The notes under the pieces are model-generated. The model saw nothing but the letters and a program-made list of their open reading frames with translations, was not told where the DNA came from and did no database searches. A DNA stretch of 64,000 nucleotides. It comes from Styela clava. Taxonomy: Eukaryota. Each line of letters starts with the position of its first letter. The first letter of the stretch is position 1. Shown here piece after piece: positions 6,611 through 63,866 of this stretch. The DNA lies in NCBI RefSeq assembly GCF_964204865.1, contig NC_135256.1, positions 4,154,001 through 4,218,000 of the forward strand. The letters run 5' to 3'. Both the position numbers and the translations under genes were made by a program.

Positions 6611-8955
6611 TCCTAAACCAAGACAGAAATCTTGTCCTATTTATATTAATAATTTTTTCTATCTTGGCTATTTTTTCGTCCCAAATTTGATTCACGCGAT
6701 TATGCCCGTAGTAAATACCTAAAATTTTAAAACTATCGTGTACAAATTAATTATAGGCAAAGTAGGATATTAATTCTCTTGCCTTTTTATTTGTACACAA
6801 TATTTTAGTTTTTTCTTTAATAATTGTCTGGACAGTGGCTAGACGAAAAGACTCCCAATTCGTTGAATATGGCATCCACCGGGGCGCGTACTGGTCTAAT
6901 TTGTGATAGAAATTGCCAAATCTTAAACCATTTATTAAGTTATTATTTAATACACGGCGGCTGAGGGGCTCTACAAAGATGGTATACAATAGCTTACTCG
7001 GGGGTCATCCTTGACGAATGACCCTGAGTATGCTAATTTCCTTGGTAAACGCCCCATTCACCTCTATAATGCTAATCATGTCGGTGTATAGGGATTTAAT
7101 TAATCTCAAAGCATTTGGGCCTAAATTATTTACTTCGAGTAGCCTCAAAAGGTAATTGTGGTTGACCATATCAAACGCCTTGAGATTATCTATTGAAAAA
7201 ATTATGTAAATAGGAATATTTTTGAGATTGGCATATGATATTGCACTATTGGTGTTATAGTGAATATCGAAGATACTACGTCCCTGGATGGTACATTTTT
7301 GGGTAGTACTTAATATGCCGGAGAAAGTAGTTAAAAGACGATTTGTTAAGAGTTTTAGTCATTATTTTATAGTCGACGTTCAGATTTGAAATCGGACGCC
7401 AATTTTCCAAATCTGAAACGTCGACTTTCTTAAAAATTAAATTCACCCGAGCTATTTTTCGAAGATTTTGGGAGGATCCCAGAAAACAAAATATTATTAA
7501 TTAGAATAAGGAATTATTTTTTAATTTAATTCCAAAAAGTCATGTAAAATTCCTACGAAAAGCAGTCGAATCCTGGCGACTCCATTCTATTTATTATAAG
7601 AAAAATCTCGGTCGCCCAGTCTTCAATTAATTGGTTATCTTCTTCTTCTTGGGTCGACACATCAATTTCTGATGTGGTTCTCCATAGAATATAATAAAAA
7701 TTATGGACCACTTATTATTTCTTTTTTATCTTTTATAATTCCAAATTCATCTTTTAATTGGACAATAATTTTTTGAAAGAAGATTTTTGGGGGCTCTTTT
7801 GTATCCTGGATCCGAGCTTTTAGTTTTATATATTCCAATTTTTGTTCCTGTTGGAGAGTTTGTTTCGGAGATTCATAATTTCAGTCTGGTGTTGACCTTC
7901 TTTTATCAAAAGTTCCATATGATTTCTTTTCATCTTATTTTCTTCTGCTTTTTTGATGGTATAAGCAGAAAGAGCTTTCTTGATGCGATATTTGACGTAA
8001 TCCTACCCTTTCTGGATGAGAGAACAATCTTCTAAATGGTGGACCAAATCTTTATATAATATATAAGGGTTTCTTATAAAAAACAATATTATTTTTCCAC
8101 ACACCCTTGCCTCACCTTATTTTCATAGAAGACTTCAATTCAAGGACTGGGACAATAGTGCGGTCGGAAACGGTTTTATTTAAATAAAGGATATTTTTTA
8201 CACAGCTCACGTAGTTTTCTGACACATAGATGCGGTCGATCCTACGTGACTGTGTGTCTATTGTACAAGTATTTAATTGTCCAGCAGGATGTCTCCTGCG
8301 AAAAATATCTACCATGCCTAATTTTTTAAAGGATTGTCCCAGTATTTTTTCTGCCTCGAAGCGTTTAAAGTGATGATCAGGAGAAGAGAGATTAAAAAAT
8401 ACTATAACTGTATATTGACATTATGCAATCCACTATAAAGCGTACAAAGCGTTGAGCATAGATTTTAACTGCTTTTTGGTCGCCTCAGTTAGAATTCCGT
8501 GGACACTAATACGCGTGCCAGCACCACACGGAAGAGGAAATGTTATAGAACCAGATGGGGTATCGAGTTGGCCGACTACGGAGGTAAGAAACTTCTCTCG
8601 ATTACCACCATCTGCGGAACTGAAAGTTATGTACCAAAGATTTTTATTAATTGGAAATATTCTTTCTACAAGATGTTTAATAGGGACGAAGCTGTTCAAC
8701 TGTCGTGAAGAGCTCATAGAACGCAGAGACCGTAGGAATGTCCTTCGATGTCAACGCGTCTACTGACTCTCCACGACGTACTTCAAGGTTTTTGACGTTG
8801 GCAACCTTAGGCAGCGACGCCGCAACACTGATAAACAGTGGCTTTAGCGCCGAAGTAGAAGCCGAAAGCCTCAAAGAAAATACTCAAGAGAGCGAGGCCA
8901 CTCCCAATACACCAAGAAATTAGAGCGGGCTGGCAATGCCACAATTCAGTTGTAA
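6611..8955 (-). mobile_element. Tx1 family A element with deletions (head, ORF1 N-half, EN, RT)
   Basis: Conserved head 8866-8955; ORF1 8433-8874; SRRIDRIY 8112-8315; KLDQYA 6747-6989. Confidence 0.85.
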
Positions 8956-9205
8956 TTTTTTTTTTTTAAAAAGCAGGCCGCAACCCACCGATACTTACTT
9001 TTTTTCATACATACGTCTTTTCAGGGAAGGCTTGTAGATCTTGTTTCCTGTAAATACCTGTTAGCAGGCAAACTAAGAACACCAGAAGAAAACAGATATC
9101 CAGAGTTAACGGACACTTCCGTGGCAGGAGAGAGTTAGGAGAAATGCACCTTGATGCACACTCATGTTAACTCTCCCTGCCACGTGATGCTCGTCTCCCC
9201 TAGAA

Positions 9206-9603
9206 CAGTGCTCTGCAACCGGTGTGCCACGAGACGATGCCAGGTGTACCGCACAGAAATTCCACTGGATGTGTTTTGGACCTCAATAAAAGAAGAATAT
9301 AAGCACATTTCCAATGCAGCTATTGAAATATTGCTCCAGTTTTGCACAACTTATGTGTGCGAACAAAGCTTTTCCTCTTTATTACTGATCAAAAATGATA
9401 AACGATCCTGTATAAAAGATGTTGACGGCGAACTTCGAGTTGCTCTTTCACGTATTGTGCTCATTAAAACAACCACAAATCTCTAATTGAAATACAAACA
9501 TAAAACAAAGTTACACTTTGTTTTTTTCGTTTGTTGTGGTGTGCCGTCGAATTCGGCAAGATTTATAAGTGTGACGCAAGTTAAAAAAGGTTGCGGAGCA
9601 CTG
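9206..9603 (+). mobile_element. hAT (Buster/Charlie-type) deletion derivative
   Basis: TIRs CAGTGCTCTGCAACC / GGTTGCGGAGCACTG; perfect 8-bp TSD CCCTAGAA; transposase C-terminal remnant FCTTYVCEQSFS. Confidence 0.92.
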
Positions 9604-12600
9604 CCCTAGAAAATGAGAAGGAGAGAGAAGTGAGGAAGAGACGATTTAAAAGGTTATGAAGGAAGGAATATTAGGAAAGAAAAAAATAAGAATTGTAAGA
9701 AACAAACAAAAAAACCTTTACCAAAAAAGAAGCCAAGATTCCTAGTGTATTTGGCGATTAAATATATATAAGATTGTTTGAATTGCTATGTTAATTATAT
9801 TATTTTATACTATTATTAATAAGAACATAGTGTTCATTAAAAAAGATATACAGTAATAGTAGAAAAGTAACTTAATTGTGTTATAAATAGGTATTTCCTG
9901 GAGAGGAAGAGAGCTATAAGAGATTATTAGTATCTTGGAGCATGAGGTTTCCAATTATTAAAAGGTATGGCCGGATAGAATCTCCGACTCACGCTCCAAG
10001 AGGTGCTGATAAAAATTTTCTAAAACAGATTTAGTTATATTATTAACATCGTTTATCTTGACATATCGATCTTCTTTATCAAAAGCCCTTTTTAAGTTAA
10101 TTATCTGAACTTTTATAATTTGAGAAATCTTAAGAACCGATAAAGCACAGTTGTTAATATAAGTGTTAAAAAAGATTTCTTTTATTTGTACACTTATCGC
10201 GCTTAAAACTTCTTCATTTAAAAAGTTATGGACTCTCGATGACATGTCAAGACAAACGGTGCATTCCAAAAAAATATGCTGGGTAGTATCCAGCCCGGCG
10301 TTACAAAATTTGCAATTTAGCTTCAGCAGACGGTTATTAAATTTGTTATACTTGAAACCCGTCTGCTTCCGCCGTTGTCCGAATAAGAAACCGTTCCGCG
10401 CAACCCTATACGAAATCTCCCGCTCATGATTATTAAAATGTTTTCTAAGATGCCGACTGAGAAGATGAACACGTTCCCCGTCGACATCGGTTAGAGAGAG
10501 GAGCTTATAATAAATATTTCGGAAGTTGGAGGTTTCCCACTCCTCAATCGAAAAGGCCAGTCTTTGAAAAAGAATAAATCTTATCGATCAGGGTTCAGGT
10601 AGACAAGGGCATGGAATTATTGAACAAAGATGGATTGTTTATTTTAATTCTGCTGCCAAGGCTGTACTGGGCCTCTCTATGCCAGAATTGTCTGGGATTA
10701 GTTATAGAGACCAGATGTTTTAGTTTTTAGCCTGACAGGCATCAATTTTAGTCCGAAGACTAATTACGCCCACGCGCCTTTATCCATATCGTCCTGAAGG
10801 ACCCTCCTACTAAGAATCTCCATTGGTTCAGAGGACCAGATGAAGGAAAAAATGGATTGCTCAATTATCTCTTTGATTTGGGACGGTATGGGAACCGACC
10901 TTACATTATACACTACCTGGGACAAGATGAGTGAATTGATTACTACAATCTTGCCATACCAGGAAAGAGAACGAATTTTACTAAGATTAAATATTTTATT
11001 AATATTAGCAATTTTTCCTTGCCAGGCTTTGGCTATCTGGTCTTTACCAAAAAAAAAACTAGAATTTTGACAGAGTCTTTTACAAGATTATTAGATCTCT
11101 GGCCCGTTGGTTTGTTCAAAAAATCTCTGTTTTATTTGTAATAATTGCCTGACGTGTGGAGGAATAAAAAAGATCCAATTCCTTTAATATAGCATCAACC
11201 GAGTATGCATCGGATACAACAAAAGTAGCATCGTCCGCATACTGGTCTAGCTTGTGTTGGAATGTACCTATCTTTAAACCTTTTAATGGATTATTATTTA
11301 TTACTCTACGGCTCAGGGGATATAGGTGTGGCATATAGGATCCTAGACGAATGCCCCAGAGTATGTTGATCTCCGTTGTGAAAGCCCCATTTACCTCAAC
11401 GATGCTACTTATATCATAATACATTGAATTTATCAATTTCAAGGCGCTCTCACCTATATTTAATCATATCGAACGCCTTGAGATTGTCTATACAAACTAT
11501 ATAACAGGGGATGTTCTTATTCCTGCTATAATTTAATGCACTAGTAATATTGTAGCGTATATCAAAAATACTGCGTCCAGGATTAGTAGTACACTTTTGT
11601 GTATTATTAACTATAGAAGAAAGGGGTCCCATGAGGCGTTTGGTGAGGAGTTTGGCGACGACCTTGTAGTCGACGTTCAGATTTGAGATCGGTCGCCAAT
11701 TTCTCAAATCTGAAGCGTTGGCTTTTTTATAAATTAATTTAACGCGCGATTGTTCAAACGAATCTGGTAATAGACCAGACAACAGAAAATTATTTATTAA
11801 AATAGTGAACTCTTTTTTAATTAGGAACCAAAACGCCACATAGAACTCTTTTGAGAAGCCGTCCAAACCGGGCGGCTTCCCATTGTCCATATCTTTTATA
11901 ATGCTAAAAACTTCATCTTTATCAGTCCATTCCGAGATCTGGTTCACATCTTCCTGAGTTAAAGATGTGCTATTTAGGATATTCAAGTATTTCTTTTGGG
12001 TCACTTTATCGATGTCAGACACCGTTCCCCAAAGGTCCGTATAAAAATTCTCCATTATATTTAAAAAAAAATTTGGATTATCTGTTATAATTCCGTTGTT
12101 ATCTTTTAATTTCCAATTTGTGGTTTGCTTCTCGTTTTTTTATCTTTTGAAATATTTTTGTAGGTGTTTCACCAGTCTCGGTTACTTTTTTAGCCTTTAA
12201 TTTTACGTAAGTTTTTATTTTGACGAAGAATAATTCTTGCCGTAGTATGACAATCTTATCGTTGTCAGTACCTTCTTTAATATGATAGTTCAGTCGTTCT
12301 ATTTTTCTTTTAATTTTTGGAGGCTATATTTGACAAAATCCCACCATGTCTGAATATGAGAGTATTGATCTATCTGATGGACTGAATCATTATACTTATG
12401 TTTTATTATAATATAGTAATCACCATATAAGCTGGTGTTGTTCTTCCACGCACCCTTGCCCCACCTTATCTTCATAGAAGACTTTAATACAAGGACTGGG
12501 ACAAGGGTGTGGTCAGAAGCGGTATTTATAAAATGATGAATATTTTTGACACCAGTCACAAGGTTTTCAGAGATGTAGATTCTGTCTATCTGTCGTGATT

Positions 12601-14527
12601 GGGTCGTGTAAAGTTGGCCGTCAGGATATTTATTACAAAAGCTATCCACCATGCTAAAGGCTTGCATAGCGGAGGCTAGTATTTTCTCTGCCCTAGAGTT
12701 TGAAATGATGACTATTAAGAACATCACGCTCATCAGAGTTAAATTCGCCAGTTATAATTACGTGTAGCAAAGGATTCTGGGTCTGGATCACACTGCGCAT
12801 CTTTTTCATGAAGTCTTTCTGAATGTGGCCTCTGACAGACGGAACATACGAATTAACAATACAGTAAGTATTGTTATCGTAAGAAAAATGCAGTCTGTCG
12901 AGTCTATCGGGAATCAGACTTTTATATTCAACATCAGTTAAAGAGATATTATTTTTAATCAGAAACCCAGTTTCAGACTTGAGATATTTGATAGTTTTAT
13001 CTTCATGGTTGAGTGTATTAAGATGCGCAGTGTAACCCAGATCGTTGGCCCAAGATTCAATATTATTTTTATTGCAGCGGTGTACTTGCTGCATAGCAAT
13101 AATATTAGGTTTCTGGTTTTGAAGCCAGATACCTAACTTAAGCCGATTAGTAGCCAACCAACCCGTTGATATTAAAAGTGGCTATTTTTAAGGAGGCCAT
13201 TGATAAAGAGGCGAGGGAAAAATACTACATTACTGTTACAATATTAAAACATAATACAACTATATTATGTATTGAGGTATTAATTATATTTATTTAATAA
13301 TTTTATTATCATCATTACAAGCAGTGAAGAATGCCATATATGAAAATCCACAAAGATGAATCCTCTCACAAGTTGTAATAAAGATGGAAATGGAAGAATT
13401 TACTGAATTGGACATACTGTATATTATATTATTCGTCTTCCTCTAGACTCTAAAGAGGCAAGACGGAAAAAACTCTAGGAGGTTTCCCTGTCCCTTTTAT
13501 CATCCCGAAAAACTGATTGTTTGTCAATTCGGGAGTAATACCAATCTGGACCAGGTTCCTTCTGTTTGCCATGGCTTCGGAGTTTATTTCGAAAAGACGC
13601 ATGGTCTTCATCGGAACTCTCCTAGAGTTTGACCAGATTTAACGGACCATCCCCCAGAGAGTTCTCCTTCTCACTAATATTATTGTTATTTCTGGTTCAT
13701 CCTGGTTTTTCCCTAGGTTTAAACTATTTACTTTAATAATATCCAATTTCCCCTTCGTGTGAGATTGGTTTGAATCATGAGAGTCGAATATCTCACGTAC
13801 TTCTGCCGGAATAGGGTGTAAATCAACCCTAACCAGGCTGGAGTACTTGTTGGGTTTATTGGATGTTCCATCATTATTTTTTTTTTAAACAATCTCTGCT
13901 TTGATGGGGTGCTAAATGCTATCTTGGAAAAGCTATATCTAGCTGGCGTCGCGGAGGTGGATGTCGCTACCGAGTTTTTCAGCTGGTGGAATTGCTGGGA
14001 ACTCGGGACAGTCTCTCTGAATATGCCCCGATTTCTTGCAGAGACGACAAGACGGAGGTAATACGCAATCTCGGGCAAGATGCCCAGATTGGAAACAGTT
14101 CAAGCAATTTTTGATATAAAGCTCTGCAGGGAGGTACGTCATGCAACGTACCCCACAAATGTTGATGAAGTCTGGAAAATTGGATACATCAAACTCATCA
14201 ACAATGGTTTGTACATAGCTATTATAAACCCTGGTGTTTTTAACGAAGATCTTGAATAATCGCCGAACATTCCCGAAATTTAAAGAATTAAGCATCGACT
14301 TTATTTGGTCTATTGTGGCATCAGTTGGAATACTACGCACACTGATTCGTGTGCCAGGGCCACGAGGCAGACTAAATTTAAGTTCGCCCGACACTATTAA
14401 AAAAAACTTTCCGCGTAGAGACCCACCATCTGTTTGCTGAAAAGTCAAATTTCACAGACCCTGTCGAATAGGAAAAATAACCTCAACAAATAATTTTAAG
14501 GGGCGCAATTTTTCCTCGGAATTGAAA

Positions 14528-14757
14528 GATAAGATTTAAATATTTATCCCGGGGGATAGGAAAGCCGTCTTATCCATATGGCGAACCACGGCCTCTCGTC
14601 CGGTTACCATTCCAAGTCGGGTATGGGATTAGTTATATTGTTTGTTTTCGGAAGCATGGACTTGGTGGTGGAGGAAGCCGTAACCGACCAGCGGTTACGT
14701 GAACCACCCAACGACGGCGAGGAGTCCAGCAATCCTCTCGCACATAACCATCCCTGC
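14528..14757 (-). mobile_element. SINE-like insertion in ORF1
   Basis: ~230-bp GC-richer insert absent from the paralogous ORF1 (compare ~51800); ends in an AAATCTTATC-type tail on the minus strand; no clear A/B box. Confidence 0.4.
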
Positions 14758-15801
14758 ATCAAAAAACGCCGCAACGGTTAGTATGTCTCGAGATGTTGAG
14801 ACATCTATCGACTCGCCGCGAGAGACCTCCACCCCTTTACAATAACTACATTCGGCAGTGACGCCGCCACGCTTGAAAAAAGCGGTTTTGGGGTCACAGA
14901 AGATGCCAGGGTAGACATGGCCTTCCGACTGCCAGGAACACTCTGAATTAATTCAGTGACGAGAGGCAAGTGTGTCCTGGCAGACATAAAAAGACTAAGA
15001 GAACAAGTTAGACAACCAGATGTTCCGCCGAAGGGAGAATTCTGTTGAACAGCTAAAATAGGCTACTATACTGTATTTATAACTAAACTTCTATTTATGG
15101 TAGTGCAGGAACGAAGACAAGTTGAACAGCTACTACTATTTAAACAAAGCAAGTCGTCAAACAAAAGCGGTAACGTCTTATTATATAAAGAACGCAACTG
15201 AAACGCCGGGGTGGCCTCAAAGAAACTACAAGAAGAAGGGGCCACTCCCAATACACGAAGAATTGGAGCGGGTTGGCAAAACCACAATTTAGTTGTACTT
15301 TTTTTTAAAGTAGGCCTCGGCCCACCGATGCTTACCTTTCTCTCATACTTACGTTTTTTCAGGGGAGGCTTGTAGATCTTGTTACCTGTAATGAATACCT
15401 CTAAGCAGGCAAAAATAAAACACCGGAGAAAACAGATGTTAGATTTGACGAACACTTCCGTGACAGAAGAGAGCTGGGAGAAATGCACCTTGATGCACAC
15501 TCATATCAACTCTCCCTGTCACGTGATGTTCGTCTCCTCTAAGGAAAAAATGAGAAAAAGGTAGTGAATAGGGAGTAAGATAGAAGAGAAGTGTTAAGAT
15601 GTTTAAAAAGAGGAAAGGTATAAGAAAATAAATAATAATTGTAAGAAATAAACAGAAAAACCTTTACCAGAAAAGGAGCCAATATTCTTGGTGTAGGCTA
15701 TATGGCGTTTGATAAAAATATTTATTTAGTCTTACTATAATTTTACTAGGTTATTTAATATATATTACTACATTAATGTTCATTAAATGAACTGTGTAGA
15801 A

Positions 15802-16710
15802 CAGGGGTGGGCAACCTTTTTCGGCTCGCGTGCCAAAATCGGCTAAATTTGAAGACAAAATTGTTCCACGTGCCAACAAAAATTTAAAACATTGCTTTGC
15901 CACTTTCAAAGCAGAGATATACAATAATAAACCTTTTAAACATGTACAGACAGATTTACTTATCGGGAAAATATCAGTCCGACAAATGGATTTGATCCCT
16001 TTATTATTCTATATCAGTGAGACTTCTGCTGCGGCATTACCGCTGATAGAGATTTCACATTGGGTTTATATTTTACAACTTCCAAAGAAATACACGGACT
16101 ACTGGTTTCAGCTTTCAGGCTACTTCTATTACGAGATTCAATAAAGTTCATAACCGAGAATCAAGATTTACAAGCATACGTAGATGAAAACATGCAGAGT
16201 AATGCAATTGCAAAGTTATCAAGAAAGTTTTTATGTCATCTCAATCACGAAATTCTGCACACCTCTCTGTTATTCCCTTTCCTAATCGCTTATATTTCTT
16301 TCGAAATTAATTTATAGCAGTAAGTTAGCAAGTAACTCTATCCAGCATGAGCTTTACAACTTTATAAATCATGCAGAAATGGAGAAAAAGGGTGGCACAG
16401 ATGAACTATATTAAGTAAGAATGTAGCAAAATGAATGCAGCGCTCTTCTTGGACGCTCACTCATTTGTTACGTCATAATATATTTTTTTATTGTAGCCAA
16501 CGTCATGGAAGTAAAAATAGAGTTTAAATAAATAACGGTTGTTAACAAACCATCAAGGATAAACGAACACCGAGTTTCATCAGATAATTCAGAGTTTTGA
16601 AACTTTTTATCTGAAGGTGAATGAACTCGTTTCCGAGGCCTCGCTCGCGTGCCGAATACATGGGCTGGCGTGCCAAGTTTGGCACGCGTGCCAGGGGTTG
16701 CCCACTCCTG
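15802..16710. mobile_element. Non-autonomous hAT element
   Basis: TIRs CAGGGGTGGGCAACC / GGTTGCCCACTCCTG; 8-bp TSD GTGTAGAA / ATGTAGAA. Confidence 0.9.
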
Positions 16711-19125
16711 ATGTAGAACATACAATAGTTAAGAGATAACCCATATTGGTTATAAATAGGGATCACAATCCCAGAAATAGTATTAGGAAATAACTGCAAT
16801 TTCTTATCAAGTATCTTGGGAACGCAAAACTTGTGCTTTCATTAGATATTATAATCGCATAATATCTCTTTCCAGTTTGGCATCAATTTATACAATATTA
16901 TATGACCATACTTAGTTTCGCGTGTCAGGAGATGTTGATAAAATTGTCTATGATAGATTTTATTATATTATTTATCTCGTTTGCCTTGACATATCGGTCT
17001 TCTTCATCGAAACTTTTTTAAACCTCATTATCTGTACCTTAAAAATTTGGAAATCTTTAAGGACAGACAATGAACAGTCAGCGCTGTAGGTGTTGTAGAA
17101 TATTTCATCTACAGAAACACTAACAGGATTTAAAGTAACGATCAGTAGAGGTTGCGCGAGGACTCTTGAATTGCATATTATAGGATTTAAAGTTATGGTG
17201 TTTAAAAAAATAATGATTCTCGAAGATATGTCAAGGCAGACTTTACATTTCAGGAAAATGTGCTGGGTGGTGCCAAGCCCAGAGTTGCAGAACTTACAAT
17301 TAAGCTTCAGCAGACGGTTATTAAATTGATTATATTTAAATCCCGTCTGCTTCCGCTTTTGTCCTAAGAGGAATCCACTTTGCACTATCCTATAAGAGAT
17401 CTTCCGTTCCTGATTATAAAAGTGCCCTCGTAAATTTCGACTGAGAAGATGAACTCGTTCCCAGTCGATATCAGTTGGGGGATGTTCTGCCCTTCCCCCA
17501 AGGAGCCTATGATATATATTATAAAGGTTAGAAGATTCCCAGTCCTTGGTTGAAAAGCCCAATCTTTTAAAAATATCAAGTCTAATCAACCAAGGTTCAG
17601 GAAGATAAGGAGCATGGGGCATGGAATTGTTAAATAAAATAGGATTGATTAATTTCATTTTGCTGCCAAGACTGAACTGGGCCCTCTCTATGCCAGAATT
17701 GACTGGGATTGGAAAGAGAGGCCAGATGTTTTAGTTTTTCAGCCTGGCAAGCAGCAATTTTAGTTCTAAGACTAACCATACCACCTTTATTGAGGTCGTC
17801 CTGAAGAATTCTCCTACCAAGGATCTCCATTTGCTCGGAGGACCAAAGAAAAGAAAAAATACAGCGCTCTATTTTCTGTACTATTTGAGGTGGTATAAAT
17901 ACCGACCTCGCACTGTACAGAACCTGGGACAATATGAGAGAATTAATTGTAATAATCTTCCCATGCCAGGATAAAGAGCGAGTCCTATTAAAATTTATTA
18001 TTCTAGTGATGTTAATTATTTTTTCTTGCCAGGTTTTGGGTATTTGATCTTTACCGAAGTAAGTACAGTACCTAAGATTTTGACAGAGTCCTTTACAAAC
18101 CGAATATGGGCCGAGAATGATAGTGTATCTCTGGCCCGTTGATTGGTGCAAAGGATCTCTGTCTTATTGGTGTTAATAGCTTGGCCTGTAGAGATCCGAA
18201 ATAATACCAGTTCATTAAAAATAGATTCCACCGAGTATGCATCGGATACAACAAAAGTTGCATCGTCCGCATACTGGTCTAATTTAGGTTCAAAAGTCCC
18301 TATCTTGATACCTTTGATTAGGTTATTATTTAATATTCTGCGGCTTAGGGGCTCCACATTGACGGTATACAGGAGCATACTCAGGGGACATTCTTGCGGA
18401 TGCCCCTGAGTATGTTAATCTCCTTTGTGAATGCCCCATTCACCTCCACGACACTTGTAATATCAGAGTTCATAGATTTAATCAATCTCAAGGTGCTCTC
18501 ACCAATATTAATTCTCTTAAAAAGAGTAAACAAGTATTGATGGTTAACCATATCCAACGCCTTGACATTGTACAAACTATATAACAGGGCAGATGTTTAA
18601 TCCTGGAATAATTTATCGTACTATTGATATTATAATGGATGTCAAATATGCTTCGAACGGGGCAGTACACTTCTGTGCACTATTAATTATGTTAGAAATG
18701 GGTCCTAAAAGGCGTCTGGTAAAAAGTTTAGCTATGACCTTGTAGTCGACGTTCAGATTTGAGATCGGACGCCAATTTCTCAAATCTGAAGCGTCGACTT
18801 TCTTAAAAATTAATTCAACGCGCTCTTTTTTTATATGAATTGTAGTCGACGTTCAGATTTGAGATCGGACGCCGATTTCTCAAATCTGAAGCGTCGACTT
18901 TCTTAAAAATTAATTTAACGCGCTCTTTTTTTATATGAATCTGGCAGGATGCCAGATAACAAAATATTAATAATTAGCAGAACAAATTCTTTTTTATTAG
19001 GGACCAGAACGCTAAATAGAATTCTTTTGAGAAGCCGTCAAGTCCTGGTGACTTCCCATTTTCTATTTCTTCAATAATATTAAGAACTTCTTCTTCATCA
19101 GTCCATGTTGAGATATTGTCTACAT

Positions 19126-52382: not shown

Positions 52383-52398
52383 AACCAAATACTCCAAT
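52380..52398 (-). ncRNA. Spliced-leader exon copy with its 3' end deleted
   Basis: ATTGGAGTATTTGGTTGTA equals the first 19 nt of the Halocynthia/Botryllus SL as I recall it; TTAAGGTA lost between GTA repeats. Confidence 0.85.
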
Positions 52399-52502: not shown

Positions 52503-53330
52503 ACACAAATTCTTGAGAACACAATATTTAAAAAAGGCATGATGACGGGCAACGCTGGTACATCTATGGCCAAGTGGTTCAGTGCCCAAAAATGGGGGTG
52601 GGGTGGACAGACCTCGAAAAAAAAATTCGAATTTTTTTTTTTTAAAAAGGTATACCACAGGGTGAGCCCCTATCGTCCTATAAAACTGCCCTAAAATTCA
52701 CATAGGTCCAGCTACTATTTTCATAAATAAGTACATTCATCAAAAAAAAAACACTGACGAAGGGCTTGAAAATACATGAGCAATCGGGACACAGCATTTG
52801 TGTTACATGTTTATTATCTTCATGGAATCTACGGTTTCGCGTCCACAGGCCTGCTACTTTCCATCTCGTAAGTTTTATCTTCACATATCAATGATGAGCT
52901 TCAACGAATTTATTCGCTGTATCAGCAGCATATCTTGCCGCAACAGCATGCAAATTTCTTAACAACAAACTTCTTTGCTGTATCAGCAACGTATTTGGCC
53001 TAATGCTCTCGGCCATAGAATATTTTAGCTCAAATTCCAAAAGATTATTTTTGTGGCATTGTTATGACGTCACAGACGCTTCACATCGCGTCCAATTTAG
53101 TTGTTTGTTGAATCAGATTCGTAGCCCACTCGCGTTTTGGCAGGATTGCAGGGCAAACAGGCGCAGAGCCGGCTAAGAACACCTCGCAGTGCGATATTTC
53201 AGAAAAGCATGAGGGCAGGCGGTGGTCCATCTATCATGACCATGCGGGCGGGACGTGTCAAATGCCCGAAATTGGGGGAGGAGGAGTGGACAGACAGACT
53301 TGAAAATTTTTTTGTTTTGTTAATTGACAT
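52503..53330. other. Putative intergenic spacer of the SL RNA tandem repeat
   Basis: Unique, non-Tx1, non-coding ~830 bp between the putative SL intron half and the next SL promoter/exon. Confidence 0.55.
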
Positions 53331-53401
53331 ATGGCAGGGCGAGTCCCAACCACCCCACTATTGTCCTAGCCATAAATTTGAGCCACGGCTCAGAAGCTTA
53401 C
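53331..53401 (-). ncRNA. Putative SL RNA intron half, displaced from its exon
   Basis: GTAAG donor; TGAGC-CGTG-GCTCA hairpin; Sm-like AAATTTATGG; GTGGGGTG/CGCCCTGC hairpin; begins exactly after poly(A). Confidence 0.7.
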
Positions 53402-53946
53402 TTTTTTTTTTTTATAAAGTAGGCCTCAACCCCCCGATACTTACCTTGTTTTTAATACTCACTTGTTGCGGGGAGGCTGGTAGATGTTCTTCTCTTTAAG
53501 TACCTATAAGAGAGGTAAAATAAAAACACCGAAAGAAAACAGAAGTCTAGATTTGACGAACACTTCCGTGACAGGAGAGAGTTAGGAGAAATGCACCTCG
53601 ATGCACACTCATATCAACTCTCCCTGTCACGTGATGTCCGTCTCATCTAAAAAAAAAGAAATTAAACAGTAAGAGGTATAGCAGAGAATGAGAGAGAAAG
53701 AAGTTATAGAGAAATAATAATAATAAGACCTTCACCAAAAAATATAGGAGAGCCATTATTCTGGTGTATAGGGCGTTTGTGAAGTCATTTGTCCTATTAT
53801 ATTATTCTACTATAAGTTATTAGAATTATTTTAGATAGCCAGATTTAATACCTATGATAGAAATATAAATAACAGACTTGGGGAGAATAGAAGTTTTTAT
53901 AACGGTTTTTATAACAATATTTGAAACGTGAGCAGCTTTTAATATA

Positions 53947-56900
53947 TTATGTATTATACCCACATAATATTTCTTTCCAGTTGGGAACCAATTCATACTG
54001 GACAATATTTCCATACCTATTTTCACGATCCAAAAGGTGTTGATAAAACCCGTTAATTACAGATTTGATTATATTATTAGTATCGTTTGCCGTCGCATAT
54101 CGCTCGTCTCTGTCGAGAACCCTTTTCATCCCAATTATGGTGACCTTAAAAAGTTGGTAAATTTTAGGGACAGATAGAGTGCTGTTTTTGTTATAGGTGT
54201 TATAGAAAATATCTTCTATTGGAACACATACAGCACTCACACATATTTTATTTAGGATGTCCAGGATTCTCGACGACATACTACGGCAAACGTTACAACC
54301 CAAGAAAATATGCTGGGTGTTGTCTGGCCCAGAGTTGCAGAATTTGCATTCCAGTTTAAGTAACCGATTATTGTATTGACCATACTTAAATCCGGTCTGC
54401 TTCCGGCGTTTTCCAAAGAGGAAACCGTTCCGGACTGTTCTAAAAGATATCCCTTTCATAATTATAAAAATGTGTCCTATGATATCGACTGAGGAGATGA
54501 ACAGCCTCCCAATCGATATCAGTGGGAGGGTGCTCAGATCTTTCCCCAAGGAGTCTTGAGTATATGGTGCGAAGGTTGGAGGACTCCCATTCCTCGGCCG
54601 AGAAGTCCAATCTTTTAAAAAGGTTAAATCTCCTCAGCCAAGGTTCAGGTACACAGATGGAATGAGGCATAGAATTGCTGAACAAGACTGGATTTATAGA
54701 TTTAATCTTGCTGCCAAGGCTATATTGGGCCCCTCTATGCCAGAATTGACTGGGGTTAGTTAGAGAGACCAGATGTTAAAACATTTGCACTTAGCAGGCA
54801 GCAATCTTAGTCCATTCCGCCTTTATTAATGTCATCCTGGAGCATCCTCCTACTCAAGACTTCCATGGGTTCAGACGTCCATAAGAAAAAAAATACATCT
54901 CTCTATTACCTGTTCAGTTTGAGGAGGTATAAATATCGACCTCGCACTGTACAGTACCTGAGACAAAATTAGGGAGTTGATGATCGTAATTTTACCATAC
55001 TAGGAGAGAGACCTGATTTTACTAAAGTTGATTATTTTATTTATAGTTGATATTTTTTCTTGCCAAGTTTTATTAATTTTGTTCTTGCCATAATAAATAC
55101 CAAGAATTTTAACAGAGTCCTTTGCATAACGATTAGGGGGCGAGAAAGATAATAATTCCCTAGCCCGCTGATTAGTACAAAGGATCTCTGTTTTATTTTT
55201 ACTGATGGCCTGGCCAGTAGATTTATAATAAAGCTCCAATTCTTGAAAAATTGCATCGACCGAGTATACATCCGATACAACTAAAGTTGCATCGTCTGCA
55301 TACTGGTCTAGATTGTGTTGAAATGTACCTATCCGTAAACCTTTTATTGAATTATTTTACGGGTAAGGGGCTCCACGTTTATGGTGTACAGGAGCATACT
55401 CATGGGACACCCTTGACGAATGCCCCTAAGTATGTTTATCTCCTTCGTGAACGCCCCGTTAACCTCAACAACGCTAGTGATGTCTGTGTACATGGATGTT
55501 ATTAACCTCAAGGCATTCTCACCTATATTTATTCTGTTAAGAATAGATAGAAGGAGTTGATGATCAACCATGTCGATCGAATGCCTTGAGATTATCAATA
55601 GCGAAAAATGCTACGTCCGGGCATAGTACATTTTTGAGATGGACTAATTATGGAAGAGAGGGGTTCTATGAGACGTTTGGTTAAAATTTTTGCAAGGATC
55701 TTATAGTCGACGTTCAGATTTGAGATCGAACGCCAATTTCTCAAATCCGAAGCGTCGGCTTTTTTAAAAATTAAACGAATAAGGGCTTTTTTGAATGAGT
55801 CTGACAGTTTTCCAGAAATAAAATGTTATTAATCATAATAATGAACTCATTTTTAATTGTGGACCAAAACGTCTCATAAAACTCCTTTGAGAAGCCGTCA
55901 AGACCTGGCGACTTCCCGCTCTCCATTTCTCGTATGATATTAAATACATCGTCTTCAGAAATCCAATTAGAAATGGGATCCGAATCATCCTTTGTTAAAG
56001 GGGTTGAATGAGTCTGACAGTTTTCCAGAAATAAAATGTTATTAATCATAATAATGAACTCATTTTTAATTGTGGACCAAAACGTCTCATAAAACTCCTT
56101 TGAGAAGCCGTCAAGACCTGGCGACTTCCCGCTCTCCATTTCTCGTATGATATTAAATACATCGTCTTCAGAAATCCAATTAGAAATGGGATCCGAATCA
56201 TCCTTTGTTAAAGGGGTCCACTCCTTTGAGAAGCCGTCAAGACCTGGCGACTTCCCGCTCTCCATTTCCCGTGTGATATTAAATACATCGTCTTCAGAAA
56301 TCCAATTAGAAATGGGATCCGAATCATCCTTTGTTAAAGGGGTTCTATTCATTAAATCTAGATATTCTGATTGGGTTGCTATGTCGACATGCGACCTAGT
56401 TCCCCATAGCTCCGTATAGAAGCTTTGTACTAAATTTAAAATGTCATCAGGATTCGTTTTTATATTGCCCTGGTAATCTTTTATTTGGGAAATCGTCGTT
56501 TCGGATTCTCTTTTTTTATTTTAATGAAAAATATTTTCGAAGGGGTTTCATCTTCCTCAGGGCTATCGATCTTTGCTTTAAGTTTAATATAGTCTAATTT
56601 ATTTTCTCGCTGAAGAAGAATTTCCAGACGAAGCTTGGTTATAACGTTATTTTTGGTTCCTTCTTTTATCAGATGTGATGATTCCTCTTATTTTCTTTAG
56701 CCTTTTGGATGGAATAGGCTATAGTAATCTTTCGGATGCGAAATTTAACAAAGTACCACCATCTCCAATTGGTGGACCAATTCTCTATAACTATATTTGA
56801 TTAGTTCAATATATGATTTGTCATTATACAAACTGGTATTATTAGGCACCCTTGCCCCACCTAATCTTCGTAGAAGATTTTAATAATAGGACTGGGACAA

Positions 56901-57613
56901 GGGTGTGGTCAGAAACAGTGTTTATTATATGGTGGATGTCTTTGAAACAAGCCAGCAGGTTTTCAGAGATGTAAATTCTGTCTATCCTGCGTGACTGTGT
57001 TCCAATTTGGCAGGTGTAGGTTTGCCCCGTAGGATATTTTCTACGGTAGACATCCACCATACCTGAAGTTTGTAGAGTTAAGCCTAGAATTTTCTCTGCC
57101 CTAGAGAGCTTAAAATGATGTTTAATTAGAACATCTCGCTCATCTAGGATAGAGTTAAAATCGCCAGTAAGTATTATGTGAAGCAATGGATCCAAGATAT
57201 GGATCACACCGCACATCTTCTCCATGAAGTCAGTCTGGATGAGGCCTCGGACAGACGGGTACATAGGCATTGATGGTGCATAATGTATTTTTATTATAAG
57301 AAAAATCAAGTCTGTCGAGCCTATTGGGAATTAGTATATTATATACTATATTTGAACAGTGGATGTTATTTTTGATCAGAATCCCAGTACCAGACTTGAA
57401 ATATTTTATAGATGAATCTTCATGGATCATGGTAATAAGATGCGCGGTGTAACCCAGATCGGTGGCCCAAGTTTGAATGATTGCTTCCTTACAGCGATGT
57501 ATTTGCTGTAAAGAGACTATATGGGGACTGTGTCTCTGTAGCAAGAGACACAGCTTACGCCAATTAGTGCTAAGACCATTTACATTAAATGTAATGATTC
57601 TTAGCGAATCCAT
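53947..57613 (-). pseudogene. ORF2: AP endonuclease, reverse transcriptase and C-terminal Cys/His finger, frameshifted
   Basis: ITFNVNGL, GDFN, SRRIDRIY, SDH, GKSPGLDGF, GIRQGCPMS, YADD codons (~55288-55302), CKFC...HIFLGC. Confidence 0.93.
55793..56343. repeat. Near-identical internal tandem duplications (213-bp and 126-bp periods)
   Basis: TPLTKDDSDPISNWISEDDVFNI.REMESGKSPGLDGFSKE occurs three times in ORF 55771-56352. Confidence 0.95.
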
Positions 57614-57835
57614 TGGAATGGGGCGATTTGAAAAAAAATGCTAGAGCAGCATATATTATTACCAAAAAATTAACTGAGAAATGATACTCAGTCAATATTA
57701 CACAGTTACAAAGAGTTATGCAATTACCTGGCAAAAAATATTGCCAAAAATTGCTGCCCACCAAGGAGACTTTTAAAACCAATAAAGAAAAGAAAGTGGT
57801 GAGAAACAGAAAATTGGAGCTATTAATAAAAGTTA

Positions 57836-59252
57836 TTATTCCTTGAAAACAGGCGCCTCAGAAAAAACGCGAGATTTAGTTGGCGGAAGAACGGAATACG
57901 CGCCTGAAGACGAGCTCTCCCGCTCCCTCTTGTCGTCCCGTAAGGTGGGATTACCTTCAATTTGTGAAAGGTTCCAGTCCAGACCCGGTTCCCTGGTCTT
58001 TTTATGGCTGCGAAGTTTATTGCAAAACGACGCAAGATCTTCATCCATACCCTCTGAGAGTCTGGCTATATTATGATAGTCTTCTCCCAGAGTTTTATCA
58101 AACTCGATGATTTTTGCCTCATTCTCTACAAGGTTTTCCGGGTCACTCACTACATTATTATTTTCTTTATCCCCAGCTGCTACCAATCTATCATTCGGGG
58201 ATTTCGATTCCAAAGAATCAGTTATCTCCTAAATTTCAGCCGGAATAGGGTGTATGTCCACTTTAACCCGACTGAAAAATTTAGATTGATCGGCAGAAGA
58301 GTTTTTCTTACTATTATTAATATTATTTTTCTTTTCCAGCTGTCCTTGCGACGATACAGCCACCGATGTTACTTTGGTGAAGCTGTATCGCGATGGCGTC
58401 TTTGGTGCCGTTTCAGCAGAGGAACTGACTGTAGGATCAACACCAGGTGTTATGGATGGAAAATCAGTACAGTCTCGCTGTACATGGCTGGATTGTTTAC
58501 AAAGACGGTAGGACGGCGGAGAATTACACTCTCTGGCCAGATGACCAGTCTGAAAACAATTCAGACAAGTCTTGATGTAAAGTTCTGGTGGTAAGTACAT
58601 TTTACACCGAAGTCCGCCAACAGTGATGAAGTCGGGAAACCTGGATTTATCAAAATCATCAAAGATGGCTTGTACGAAGCCGTTGTACACCTTGGTGTTT
58701 TAAGGTATACTCGAACGACTCTACGTACTGTACCACAACCAAACGAGTTTAAAATGGACTTCACTTGCTCTTGCGTGGCTTCTGTGGGAATACCACGCAC
58801 GCTAATGCGGGTCTCAGGGCCACGCGGCAAAGAAAAATTAATTATACCTAAAGGGGTATCTACTTGACTCCCCATACTATTAAGAAAAAGATCTCGTGTT
58901 GGTGTTCCCTCCACAGGCTGAAACGTCAAATTCCAAGTGCTCTGACGGATGGGAAAGACATCAGCTACTAGGTTTTTATAAGGACGTAACTTATCCACGG
59001 TGCTGAAAAGCTCATAAAAGGCTGAAACCGTCGAGATGTCTCTAGATGTTGTAAATCTATCGACTCGCCTCTGCTAACTTCGACACCTTTCACGTTAGCT
59101 ACCTTTGGAAGTGAGGCAGCTACGTTGGAGAAAAGGGAGCTAGACGTTGAAGGCTGCGTAGTCGGCATGGCGGGTAACCCAGCAGAAACCTGTCTGCCGA
59201 GGACACTATGACGCGAGTCAGCGCCAAGAGCCATGTGTGTCCTGGCAGACAT
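57836..59252 (-). pseudogene. ORF1 (gag-like, two CCHC knuckles), frameshifted
   Basis: MSARTH start; CLNCFQTGHLAREC; four consecutive ORF pieces. Confidence 0.9.
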
Positions 59253-59557
59253 ACAAAACAAGACTATTCACTACTATAGAAAAGGTTTATTACAGGAGGA
59301 GGTAACTATTACTAGAAGAGATACCTATTTAAGCTACCTTTTATGATAGAACAGGAACAGTAACAAACTCAGGACTATAGAAGGTAACTCAGACAACACA
59401 CAAAGCAGAATCAAACAACAGCGGTAACGATCTATTAAATAAAGAATCGCTACGGAAACGCCAGGGTGGCCTCAAAGAAAATACAAAAAGGAGAGGCCAC
59501 TCACTCCCAATACACCGAGAATTGGAGCGGGCTGGCAAGACCACAATTTAGTTGTAC

Positions 59558-61278
59558 TTTTAAGTAATTGTTTTAAATGTAGGCTCCTGATGGGCGCCAG
59601 ATTCTCCCATTCATTCTTTCCACGCTTTTTAGCTATTACTGTTGCCTTGGCATCTTTCAGTTTATTATGGAAAAAAACTTCTCTTACAGCAGGACTACCC
59701 TCGATATCAGAACACTGCCAATCTGGGCCCGGTTCCTCTGCTTTCTTATGGCTACAAAGTTTTTTACGAAATGTTTCAAGATCTTCATCTGAACCCTCTG
59801 AGAGTCTCGCTATATTAAAACAATCTTCTCCCAGAGGGTTATCCAGTTCAACGATTTTATCTTCTTTTTTTTTTCAAGGTTTTCCGGGTCAACTGCCAAT
59901 TTTTCATCTTCCAGATTCGGTCTCTCAGATTCTAATGAATCCGAGAAATCACAAGCTTCAGCCGGAGTAGGGTGTACGTCCACCCTAACCCGGCCGAGAG
60001 ACTTAGATTTATCAGCAGCAGCAGTAGATTTTTCTTTTGTTCTATTATTAGTTTTATTTTTCAGCTGATCCTGTGATGATACAGCCACAGATGTTGATTT
60101 GGTGAAACTGTATCTACCAGCCGTCTTTGCAACAATCTTGGCAGGAGAGTTAACCTGAAGTTGAGGCTGGCTACTTCGTTCCACTGCTGGTGTTATTGCA
60201 GTGAAGTCAGTGCACTCTCGCTGCACATGGCCGGATTTTTTGCAAAGACGGCAGGTCGGAGGCATTACACACTCTCTAGCCAGATGACCTGCCTGAAAAC
60301 AATTCAAGCAGGACTTGGTATAGAGTTCGGGAGGTAAGTATGTTTTGTAACGTAGTCCACCAACATTGACGAAATCGGGAAAGTTGGACTTCTCGAAGTC
60401 GTCAATGATGTCTTGTACGTTGCCATTATACACCTTGCTGTTACGTAGATATATTTTGAAAACACGCCTCACTTTGCCACAGTTAAAAGAGTTGAGCATT
60501 GTTGTTAGTTGCTTGACTGTGGCTTCAGTGGGAATACCACGCACGCTAATGCGGGTCCCTGGACCACGGGGCAGAGAAAAATTAATAACACCTAACGGGG
60601 TTTCTAGTTTACTACCAACACAGTCAAGAAATTGATCCCGCGTTGGTCGTCCGTCAGTAGGTTGAAAAGACAAATTCCAAACACCCTGGCGGATTGGAAA
60701 AATTCCACCAACTAGGATTCTGTAAGGACGTAGTTTTTCAACAGTATAAAATAGATTAAAAAATTCCGAGACGATCGAGATGTCGTTGGTTGTCATGACA
60801 TCGATCGACTCGCCCCTGCTGACTTCCACACATCTCACGTTTGCTACTTTTGCAAGTGAGGCAGCAACGCTAGAAAAAAAAGAGGCCTAGATGTTGAAGG
60901 CTGTGTAGTCGGCATTGCAGATGTTAAAGCAGGAACCTGTCTACCAAGAACACTCTGACGAGAGTCAGTGCCGAGAGGCATACGTGTTCTGGCAGACATT
61001 AAAGACTATTTATAAACACGAAGAGAACTATTTACTATATGAAGTTACTCTACAAGAAGACACCTATTTAAACTACCTTTTATGGTATTTCAACAACAGC
61101 AAAAACTTAGGACTATATATGTCAAACTATGTAACACACAGATAGAAAAACAACAGCGGTAACGAAAACGCCGAGGGGGGAGGGGGGGGGGGGTTTCAAG
61201 AAAGATTCCAAGAAGGAGAGGCCGCTCCCATTACACCGAGAATTGGAGCAGGTCGGCAAGGCCTCAATTTAGTTGTAC
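59558..61278 (-). mobile_element. Family A element lacking almost all of ORF2
   Basis: GTACAAC head at 61278; 342-aa ORF1 piece 59810-60838; vestigial tail (GCCTAC plus A-rich) at 59558-59585. Confidence 0.85.
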
Positions 61279-63866
61279 TTTTTTTTTTATAGTAGGCCTC
61301 GACCCACCGATACTCACCTTGTTTTTATACTCACGTGTTGCAAAGGAGGCTTGTAGATGTTATTTTCTTTAAATACCTGTTAAAGAGGTAAAATATAATG
61401 CACCAAACAAAAGATAAACAAATTTTAAGATTCAGCGAACACTTCCGTGACAGAAGAGAGTTTGGAGAAATGCACCTTGACGCACACTCATGTAAACTCT
61501 CCCTGTCACGTGATGCTCGTCTCCTCTAGGAAAAAAATACAAGAGAAAAGAAAGAAAAAAAAAAGAATTGAGAGAGAGAAAAGGTAAGATATTAATAACA
61601 AAGGAAAGTATAAAAGAATACATTAATCATAAGAATTATACAGAAATACCGTTACCAAAAAAAGCCATAATTCTTGGTGTATATGGCGTTTGTAATAGAT
61701 AGAAATTTGCCTCGCTTATATTATGTTATATTTTATTATACCAGTATTAATATAAGACCTAAGTGTTCCTTTCATAAGCTTTGTTTTTGCTGCTGCTGCT
61801 GCCTTGGCCTCCACGTTGATACATAATTTGAAGCAGTATAGAAAAAAAATACCAGTTTGGAAAATATTGCCAATGTAGATTTACTGTGGGAAGATCCTGA
61901 GTAGCTGATATTAAACTATTGAAATTAATATGGGAAGAGTCATATACCTTCCTGGAACAAATCTTGCCACAAATGAGTGCCCACCAGGTATACTTTCAAA
62001 ACCACTATGAAGAAGAAAATTGTGAAAAGAATGCAATTGAAGGTAGTCAGATGATTATTTTTTTATTTATTTATTCTTCACGCCCGGCTTCTCGGACTCC
62101 AGCGAATCCGAGATATCACAAGCGTCAGTCGGAATAGGGTGTATGTCCACCCTAACCCGACCGAGAGACTTAGATTTACCAGCAGCAGCAGATTTTTCCT
62201 TTATTTAAATATTTTTATTTTTCAGCCGATCCTGTGATATTACAGCTGCAGATGTTATGTTGGTAGAGCTGTATCTACCAGACGTCTTTGCAACAACCTT
62301 GGCAGGAGAGTTAACCTGGAGTTGAGGCTCGCTACTTCGTTCCACTGCTGGTGTTATTGCAGGGAAGTCAGTGCACTCTCGCTGCACATGGCCGGATTTT
62401 TTGCAAAGACGGCAGGACGGAGGCATCACACACTCTCTAACCAGATGAACCGCCTGAAAACAATTCAAGCAGGATTTGGTATAGAGTTCGGGAGGTAAGT
62501 ATGTTTTGCAACGTAGTCCAACAGCATTGCCGAAATCGGGAAAGTTGGACTTCTCAGAAGTCGTCAATGATGGCTTGTACGTAGCCGTTATACACATTGG
62601 TGTTACGTAGGTATATTTTAAAAACATGCCGCACCTTGCCACAGTTAAAAGAGTTGAGCAGTGTTGTTAATCGCTCGACTGTGGCTTCAGTCGGAATACC
62701 ACGCACGCTAATGCGGGTTCCAGGACCGCGAGGCAGGGAGAGATTAATGGTACCTAATGGAGTATAAATTTTACTACCAACACTTTCAAGAAATGTATCT
62801 CGTGTTGGTCGTCCATCCGTGGGTTGGAAAGTCAAATTCCAAATACCCTGGCGGATTGGAAAAATTTCTCCGACTAGGGTTTTATATGGGCGTAGTTTTT
62901 CCACAGTACTAAATAGATCAAAGAATTCCGAGACGGTCGAGATGTCCTTTGTTGTGATGACATCGATCGACTCGCCTCTGCTGACTTCAACACATCTAAC
63001 GTTAGCTACCTTAGGAATAGAGGCAGCAACTCTAGAGAAAAGAGGCCTGGATGTTGGAGGCTGTGAAATCGGCACGGCAGATGTTGCAGCAGGAACTTGT
63101 CTGCCGAGGACACTCTGACGCGAGTCAGTGCCGAGAGGCATGTGTGTCCTGGCGGACATAAAAAAATTATCTACGAATATGAAAAAAACTACTTACTATT
63201 ACAATCGAAATTTACTATACGAGAAGAGGTACTAAACTATTATTTATGGTAGTAGAGGGACAGTAAAAAAAAAAACAGGACTACATAAGTTAAATAGTAC
63301 AACACAAACCAAGTAGAAACAAAAGCGGTTTTAGGGAACAATATGTTTTTTTGCTATAATTTCTGTATTGCTGTTGTTTCTGATCTGATCTTATGAAGAA
63401 GACATACTCCTGGTACCGAATACATATATTGCAATTGTATATTTACAAATACAAAGAACAGTTCCAAGTCATGACTGATAAGTCACATAAAATCAAAGTT
63501 TCACTGCAAGCCCGAGTTCGTTAATTACTTGTTCATCGTTATCCTTTCTTTTCTCTCCTAACGATTGGTCGCTTTTATGCTGGTTTTGGTATCCTTAGGG
63601 CATGACGCGTTATCGTCATCGTACCTTACAGGACGTCTAATTGTTACGTATTTTATGACTGAGAGATTGCTTCTAATTTTAAGATTAGTATGACTTCAAG
63701 TCTAAACACGTAACTTAACCAAAACCAGCAAAATTACCCAATATCCTATACGGTAACGATCTATAAAAGAAACGCCGAGAGGGCCTCAAGAAATTCCAAG
63801 AAGGAGAGGCCACTCCCAATACACCAAGAATTGGAGCGGGCTGGCAATGCCACAATTTAGTTGTAC
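61279..63866 (-). mobile_element. Family A element fused to the SL exon: head, ORF1, 3' UTR and poly(A), with ORF2 deleted
   Basis: Head 63770-63866; ORF1 62205-63159; hairpin ~61433-61521; poly(A) 61279-61288; foreign inserts ~61780-62080 and ~63330-63750. Confidence 0.85.

Follow-up and report, generated by a model that had tools for sequence, protein, structure and literature searches.

L1-type retrotransposons at the spliced leader exon/intron boundary of Styela clava and a target site that each insertion may rebuild

Introduction

Site-specific long interspersed nuclear elements (LINEs) that live in multicopy RNA genes follow a textbook safe-haven strategy. To our knowledge, spliced leader (SL) genes were previously known as targets only of restriction-endonuclease-type elements, in trypanosomatids and nematodes. 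Here, we describe LINEs inserted in SL genes of the tunicate Styela clava, in a 64,000-nucleotide stretch of contig NC_135256.1 (hereafter C8; C8:4154001-4218000, the window) that forms the low-coordinate, decayed edge of an SL RNA gene array. In the literature that we searched, no L1-type element was found at a tunicate SL donor site.

Several described systems offer points of comparison. Target-specific LINEs of the Tx1 clade include Tx1L in Tx1D, Keno in U2 small nuclear RNA (snRNA) genes, and Kibi and Koshi in microsatellites (Kojima & Fujiwara 2004, in PMC4494074). Tandem sequential insertion of target-specific LINE or short interspersed nuclear element (SINE) copies is already known (PMC4494074, PMC4640811); tandem copies of the Tx1-mobilised SINEU-3 are reported to arise in this way (PMC4494074), and Utopia-1_NVit occasionally stands in tandem in U2 genes (PMC4640811). 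The R1 and R2 elements of rDNA arrays are co-transcribed with their host gene and rely on the adjacent host sequence for a 5' junction that is exact (work of Eickbush and of Fujimoto, cited in PMC4494074).

Results

Insertion at the SL exon/intron boundary

The SL intron motif occurs 116 times genome-wide, always on the minus strand of C8 and between 4.175 and ~4.59 Mb, and empty SL units repeat with a period of 1634 bp, which together place the window at the low-coordinate edge of the array. This is the main SL gene array of the S. clava genome, and possibly the sole one. Its canonical exon (ATTGGAGTATTTGGTTGTATTAAG) is identical to the published 'Chordata 1' spliced leader (PMC3795323 Table 1). 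A contiguous 314 kb was analysed in detail and contains 38 gene units, each marked by an intron motif, 33 of which are occupied. The part from 4.42 to 4.62 Mb was followed by motif coordinates only, and these revealed single insertions only.

Two element families, A and B, insert between the SL exon (...TTAAG) and the intron (GTAAGT...). The exon|GT 5' junction is exact in 28 of the 33 occupied genes and the A(n)|GTAAG[T/C]TT 3' junction in 27 of the 33, supporting the boundary AAG|GTAAGT as the target, as a first-pass annotation of the window had proposed. Copies truncated at the 5' end have deleted 1-10 nucleotides (nt) of the SL exon, and the terminal run counts 14-51 A in young tails and 4-12 at the old junctions of the window. 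The invariant poly(A)|GTAAG 3' junction indicates that the endonuclease nicks the bottom strand exactly between the last G of the exon and the GTA of the intron, with reverse transcription starting there. The annotation had also held that every element begins with GTA and thereby recreates AAG|GTA. This is correct for family A, whereas family B supplies only GT, so that the rebuilt site is better written AAG|GT(A).

Insertions outside the array point to the same preference. Off-array 3' flanks start with GTA in 6 of 32 distinct cases, against ~2.7% expected (p=2e-4), and one off-array copy shows the target-site duplication GTAGCA. Family-A-type tails also adjoin the GTAAGC... or GTGAGT... starts of other repeated loci on C4, C6 and C2, and sequence beyond the first few intron bases is therefore not critical. 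The nick preference for GTA, this tolerance of downstream change and the exon-free junctions described below together support the exon plus GT(A) as the working target, which the element itself would restore.

These other loci start with a splice-donor-like GTAAGC or GTGAGT followed by a stem-loop. They form clusters of at least 15 copies on C4 (23.296-23.469 Mb; L041, L064, L065 and L084) and at least 4 on C6 (19.28-19.58 Mb; L066 and L067), and also occur at L042 and L050. They could be further SL-like or small-RNA gene families that serve as targets; the single C4 unit that was compared lacks both similarity to the SL unit of C8 and any exon that could be recognised. Within the SL array, two unoccupied genes have a mutated boundary, TTAAA|GTAAG and TTAAAATAAATTT (C8:4413402-4413420 and C8:4397668-4397686), and may be either dead or alleles that escape insertion.

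Precise tail-to-head junctions in the window

Read on the minus strand, the window contains all six precise junctions that had been reported for it. At 61278 and 15298, a run of 8-12 A abuts GTACAACTAAATTG, and at 59557 the run is just 4 A long and follows an unusual tail. The point changes reported for two heads are real: TTACAACTGAATTG follows A12 at 8955, and GTGTAACTAAATTG follows A9 at 23186. At 53401, A12 stands against GTAAGC from the first base of the SL intron, recognisable by its stem-loop and Sm-like AAATTTATGG. The 18-nt family-A head occurs ~50 times in a single 0.43-Mb cluster of C8, on one strand, with a handful of occurrences elsewhere, and the junction pattern is far beyond chance. 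A young stack outside the window (C8:4359771/4353590) has the same arrangement, with a 6181-bp front element, at least 30 A and a 2613-bp back element.

Simple tandem duplication had been set aside in the first-pass annotation on the grounds that the joined elements belong to diverged subfamilies. Diverged subfamilies do meet at 61278, 59557, 15298 and 8955/23186 and in the young stack, but the argument for independence fails within the 8955/23186 pair. The joined subfamilies differ at 59557 and in the young stack, and the 15298 junction, compared with those at 8955 and 23186, has discordant identities on its tail and head sides (60% vs 82-83%). The two elements joined at 61278 (A1 and A2) are related copies carrying only the first open reading frame (ORF1), 86.9% identical over 1105 nt, and for this pair a precise tandem duplication of one element is possible. 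The 8955 and 23186 junctions are duplicates at the DNA level, with identities of 87.3% over 903 nt of tail side and 87.4% over 95 nt of head side. Another copy of this region, the third, lies at ~35911 and has lost ~100 nt, junction included, and the fragment pair B8|B9 is 82-90% identical to T7|T8. A block of more than 9 kb with several elements has thus been duplicated as DNA and has multiplied part of the stack. Since 8955 and 23186 lie in these duplicated blocks, the window holds four independent tail-to-head junctions and not five. At these four and in the young stack, tandem copies stand as independent insertions with the target motif restored between them, and these five junctions were used in the comparisons below.

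Template RNA and use of the SL promoter

Off-array copies support the proposal of the annotation that the exon-proximal element uses the SL promoter. The SL exon stands directly before the family-A head in 7 of 7 copies (AAG, ATTAAG, and 13, 20, 22, 23 and 23 nt), and then gives way to unrelated flank. Both family-B heads have exon sequence as well, one a near-full 23-nt exon and the other a diverged exon piece. Altogether, 6-23 nt of exon precede 8 of the 9 heads and just AAG the ninth. The transposing RNA therefore starts at or near SL +1, and the template would be a read-through transcript from the SL gene's own promoter that begins with the SL exon. That off-array copies keep the exon makes efficient 5' trimming unlikely; across the whole window, no family in Rfam attained its gathering score, and no known self-cleaving ribozyme family was found at the element 5' end.

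Two further off-array arrangements involve SL exon pieces. A family-B copy at C5:4631281-4631415 consists of a U1-like 5' end (ATACTTACCTG...), sequence of unknown origin and the diverged SL exon piece; it resembles the 5' chimeras with snRNAs that L1 makes by template switching. A dispersed repeat (L055-L060 and L062; C1, C3, C8:19.84 Mb, C9 and C13) contains an internal SL exon piece, GGAGTATTTGGTTGTATTAAG, followed by GTAGATTTTCC..., with the same upstream sequence in every copy. This repeat is either a further GTA-headed element whose secondary target is fixed or one that took up an SL-element chimera.

A site that may be used again

Target-primed reverse transcription yields a 3' junction that is precise by nature, whereas precision of the 5' junction depends on the guidance of homology. 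At an SL gene, the cDNA copy of the exon carried by the template RNA could pair with the target exon and so heal the 5' end to exon|GTA-head, with nothing duplicated or lost. The first bases of the element, GT(A), would leave the occupied gene reading AAG|GTA again beside an intact exon, and the rebuilt site could be nicked a second time. A second element would then land in front of the first, with its new poly(A) meeting the old head in a precise 3' junction of the ordinary kind, which would explain why no exon remnant lies between tail and head. The new copy would come to stand behind the promoter, and the older copy would be pushed downstream. At the array edge, weak homogenisation may let such stacks persist until block duplication, internal deletion and foreign insertions scramble them.

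The independent tail-to-head junctions agree with this scheme. Insertion in front makes the new-poly(A)|old-head joint a 3' junction, while the RNA-borne exon heals the 5' end elsewhere, and an exon-free joint is expected. Exon sequence was found at 0 of the 5 junctions, compared with at least 6 nt in 8 of 9 off-array copies (Fisher p=0.003). The claim that the next element inserts in front is thus the best reading of the precise, exon-free joints. Overall, we consider a rebuilt AAG|GTA site, insertion in front of it and use of the SL promoter to be the best account of the precise junctions, and a probable one.

Element families

Family A starts with GTA[C/T]AAC and comprises 6.0-6.2-kb copies, with ORF1 (zinc knuckle) and ORF2 (APE endonuclease and reverse transcriptase [RT]), and 2.6-2.8-kb ORF1-only derivatives. 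Family B starts with GTTTGTTC and is 5.85 kb long. In Pfam, ORF2 of young copies of both families matches RVT_1 (E=8e-29 to 3e-33) and Exo_endo_phos (E=3e-9 to 8e-16), and zf-CCHC is present in ORF1 of family A (long and short forms) and of family B. The only endonuclease domain recovered was the N-terminal APE domain, and no restriction-like endonuclease of the CRE/NeSL type appeared. The closest solved relative of ORF2 is human L1 ORF2p (E=1.5e-69, residues 4-859), and R2 proteins match at 1e-21 at best, over the RT portion alone. No named database homologue of ORF2 was found: the nearest proteins are unnamed and at most 29% identical, and the protein atlas matches are generic RT/endonuclease clusters. 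The combination of RT and endonuclease, a constant 3' junction with poly(A), 5' truncation of varying extent and the loss of a few target bases identifies these elements as non-long-terminal-repeat retrotransposons that integrate by target-primed reverse transcription. They are best explained as LINEs of the L1 group, putatively Tx1-like, that appear specialised for the SL exon/intron boundary.

A third family, C, ends in CTCTGATCCG(T)AATT-poly(A) and inserts 5 nt further into the intron, at GTAAG|TTTCTGAGCC (C8:4260000-4267873, C8:4407877-4411788 and also C8:4388395-4391676). Families C and A can occupy one SL gene. In the two genes that they share, the family-A tails (A54 and A28) are longer or purer than the family-C tails, which hints that A came after C. 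One unit, at C8:4247852-4250711, is a chimera in which the first 81 nt are identical to the family-B head, followed by the family-A 3' half from ~nt 3268 and a family-A tail; either the RT switched templates, or a B|A stack later suffered an internal deletion. Family A itself has a modular 3' end, reading ...CGTAAGTAT-A(n)-GTAAGTATCGGTGGGTCGAGGCCTAC-TTT-A(n) (young 3' ends at, for example, C8:4330036, 4317964 and 4301511), and some copies retain an internal A18 ahead of the last 31 nt (GTAAGTATCGG...GGCCTAC). These last 31 nt look like an intron start that was captured by read-through (3' transduction) and fixed as a new 3' end.

Organisation of the window

All features below lie on the minus strand and are given from the promoter side onward. 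SL gene A (63867-63922) has a promoter box, TATATAAG, at 63922-63915. Its 24-nt exon (63890-63867) differs from the canonical one by three changes and ends in ...TTAAG directly at the head of A1. A1 (61279-63866) is the exon-proximal, ORF1-only family-A element of 2588 bp, ending in GGCCTAC-TAT-A10. It is joined at 61279/61278 to A2 (59558-61278), another ORF1-only family-A element, of 1721 bp and with a shortened 3' untranslated region (UTR), and this in turn at 59558/59557 to A3 (53402-59557), a full-length family-A element of 6156 bp that carries the ORF1 zinc knuckle and the ORF2 APE endonuclease and RT, along with many frameshifts and stops. The A12 tail of A3 adjoins the intron and downstream spacer of gene A (52787-53401), from which unit positions 530-1196 have been deleted.

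The exon of SL gene B (52383-52398) lacks its last 5 nt (TTAAG) and is fused through a shared GTA to the head of B1. Behind it stands a 31-kb stack (21024-52382) of ~12 family-A and B-like fragments, B1-B12, interrupted at 47329-48309 by a hAT transposon remnant (Dimer_Tnp_hAT, E=5e-9). Its joints are mostly internal-to-internal deletion scars, and they include the precise 23187/23186 junction and a junction of poly(A) with a 5'-truncated body at ~28421. The last SL intron remnant of the array (20940-21019, unit positions 6-85) is fused to the B12 tail without poly(A).

Beyond gene B, ~24 kb more elements follow in the same orientation and without SL flank. T2 (15299-19126), the full-length T3 (8956-15298) and T4 (6612-8955), which together span 6612-19126, are joined by the precise junctions 15299/15298 and 8956/8955, and neither SL exon nor intron flank survives around them. 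The multi-element block T6-T3 (2679-11464) is colinear with 29294-38371 (B8-B5) at 83-94% identity. T6 and T7 (1-5700) form a further tandem duplicate and are 93-97% identical to each other over most of their length.

Age order and alternative readings

According to the first-pass annotation, the elements form a chronological stack, in which divergence should rise with rank distance from the exon. We examined age against rank with two consensus-free clocks. The first counts stops and frameshifts per 100 aligned codons; read from the exon end backwards, it gave 0.55, 0.43 and 0.85 in gene A (A1-A3) and 0.56, 0.60, 0.95, 1.12, 1.13, 2.11, 1.64, 3.09, 2.64, 2.36 and 1.36 in gene B (B1-B12; 11 values). 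The terminal stack (T1-T8) gave 2.75, 1.68, 1.70, 1.31, 2.11, 1.48, 2.73 and 2.69. In gene B, rank and ORF-disruption density are correlated (Spearman rho=0.82, p=0.002), and the front five fragments differ from the back six (p=7e-6). The second clock was calibrated on young ORFs that are open (d12/d3 ~0.3) and measures how far change at codon positions 1 and 2 exceeds the level expected from them. In gene B, it makes the front youngest (0.005-0.06) and the middle oldest (0.24). The exon-proximal element of gene B deleted TTAAG and so destroyed the target, which fits the last insertion there.

Several observations weigh against repeated insertion in front, or against the form in which it was first put. 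Two of the junctions listed for it, 8955 and 23186, descend from one duplicated junction. Under the second clock, the two fragments next to the intron come out young (0.02), for which reason its correlation with rank in gene B is not significant (rho=0.33). Partners across every precise junction are equal in apparent age (A1/A2/A3 and T2/T3/T4 by the first clock), and private substitutions in the young stack likewise reveal no age difference between front (23/6181, 0.37%) and back (9/2613, 0.34%). At B8|B9 (~28421) and its duplicate T7|T8, poly(A) stands against a 5'-truncated body that starts with GATAGT and has no GTA; either insertion can do without GTA or it sometimes takes place behind. 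A same-site stack was found in only 1 of ~47 occupied young units, and re-use of the rebuilt site is therefore infrequent.

A clean chronological stack is thus not supported by the window: one stack alone, the 31-kb one of gene B, shows a gradient, and it does so under the ORF-disruption clock only, so that stack order is age only as a coarse tendency there. Block duplication, deletion scars and foreign insertions such as the hAT remnant mean that order reflects age only roughly. Comparison of the young stack with sister units through their spacers, which differ by 1-3 nt, gave no resolution. A seemingly shared frameshift was considered as a sign that one old insertion gave rise to both A3 and the 3' part of B12, and this was rejected as too weak, a 2-nt deletion being set against an overlapping 7 nt.

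The alternative that fares best is that new elements enter behind or inside the stack, the endonuclease needing only an A-rich run followed by GTA. The tail|intron joint poly(A)|GTAAGT and the tail|head joint poly(A)|GTACAAC would then serve as targets in their own right, and growth would take place at the intron end or at both ends. The A-rich|GTA form of the off-array sites, the B8|B9 joint and the codon-position clock of gene B, oldest in the middle and younger at both ends, are all in its favour. Under this alternative, however, the old-poly(A)|new-head joint would be a 5' junction without exon homology, at which exon pieces or truncation are expected, as in 8 of 9 off-array copies; all five independent junctions are exact and exon-free. 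Had microhomology with poly(A) guided the joints, one additional G or a truncation of 10 nt should be present, and neither was found. We therefore regard growth from behind as unlikely.

Somewhat less likely still is the integration of a tail-to-head pair in a single event, either by a jump of the RT from the 5' end of one RNA to the poly(A) of a second or by copying of a read-through dimer RNA that covers two stacked elements. It would account for the equal apparent age of the partners in every pair, although the clocks are blind to intervals below a few percent divergence. Read-through past the poly(A) site has occurred, as the last 31 nt behind an internal A18 in some copies attest, and the unit with family-B nt 1-81 joined to a family-A 3' half is of the kind that a jump could leave. 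A jump from an exon-bearing RNA would, however, leave exon in the junction, where there is none, and a dimer RNA would merely copy a junction that had already formed. Descent of all junctions from a single ancestral one by DNA duplication, which the annotation itself had raised, holds for 8955, 23186 and the decayed copy at ~35911 (equal identity on both sides, colinear duplicated blocks) and is refuted as a general explanation, with next to no probability left to it, because 61278, 59557, 15298 and C8:4353590 join different subfamily pairs with discordant side identities, e.g., 60% vs 82%.

The element head as a possible SL RNA mimic

The element head, which adjoins the SL exon in occupied genes, is unusually conserved in family A. 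Its nt 1-100 (window 63766-63866) are 85-89% identical among subfamilies, compared with just 40-57% in the rest of the 5' UTR. The head also has a GUA donor, the Sm-like motifs AAAUUGUGG and AAATTGTGG and a stem-loop; exon and head together are predicted to form a 12-bp hairpin across the donor, with a fold z-score of -1.7 that is not significant. Speculatively, the 100-nt head might mimic the non-exon part of SL RNA, in which case the rebuilt AAG|GTA would be selected and not a by-product; we consider this improbable. If it were true, an occupied SL gene would still yield a trans-splicing-competent donor whose 'intron' is the whole retrotransposon, and the element would preserve both the leader supply of its host (or exploit the Sm/SL snRNP pathway) and its own landing site.

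Discussion

Our analysis suggests that an L1-type lineage in a chordate relative, unrelated to the restriction-endonuclease-type elements of other SL genes, took the same niche with a splice-donor boundary as its site, a borrowed SL promoter and a landing site that can be used again. The system offers a natural case for studying how an APE endonuclease and homology between RNA and target set single-nucleotide specificity, which is relevant to programmable insertion. A further lesson is how parasitised units come to be shed or buried at the margins of a tandem gene array. If the chronological stack were true, it would amount to a built-in fossil record of LINE subfamilies, a record that duplication and deletion blur here.

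With the Tx1 clade, these elements have in common an APE-type endonuclease with RT, a poly(A) tail, an ORF1-encoded protein and insertion, precise to the nucleotide, in a multicopy small-RNA gene. Unlike those elements, the target here is the exon/intron boundary of the SL gene. Between tandem SINEU-3 copies lies a target duplication of 16 bp; in S. clava, nothing but the GT(A) of the element itself appears to restore the site. Utopia, the other element seen in tandem, differs from ours in having a restriction-like endonuclease and in belonging to another clade.

In their residence, these elements resemble SLACS, CZAR and CRE1/2 of trypanosomatids and NeSL-1 of nematodes, which likewise make their home in tandemly repeated SL RNA genes, where many copies offer a safe target. 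In those elements, a restriction-like endonuclease follows the RT and the insertion site lies within the SL exon (see also PMC4640811), in contrast to the N-terminal APE endonuclease and the splice-donor boundary site found here; the SL-gene niche was therefore acquired independently. With R1 and R2, the S. clava elements appear to share co-transcription with the host gene and the use of host flank for an exact 5' junction. They further share the occupation of neighbouring sites by different families (A and B at AAG|GTAAG, C 5 nt in) and the gathering of old, damaged units at the array margin. They differ from R1 and R2 in that no 5' ribozyme family was detected by the Rfam gathering search, in a host promoter that appears to be of the TATA-containing small-RNA type and not that of RNA polymerase I, and, compared with the usual R1/R2 picture, in the stacking of elements at what would be one rebuilt site.

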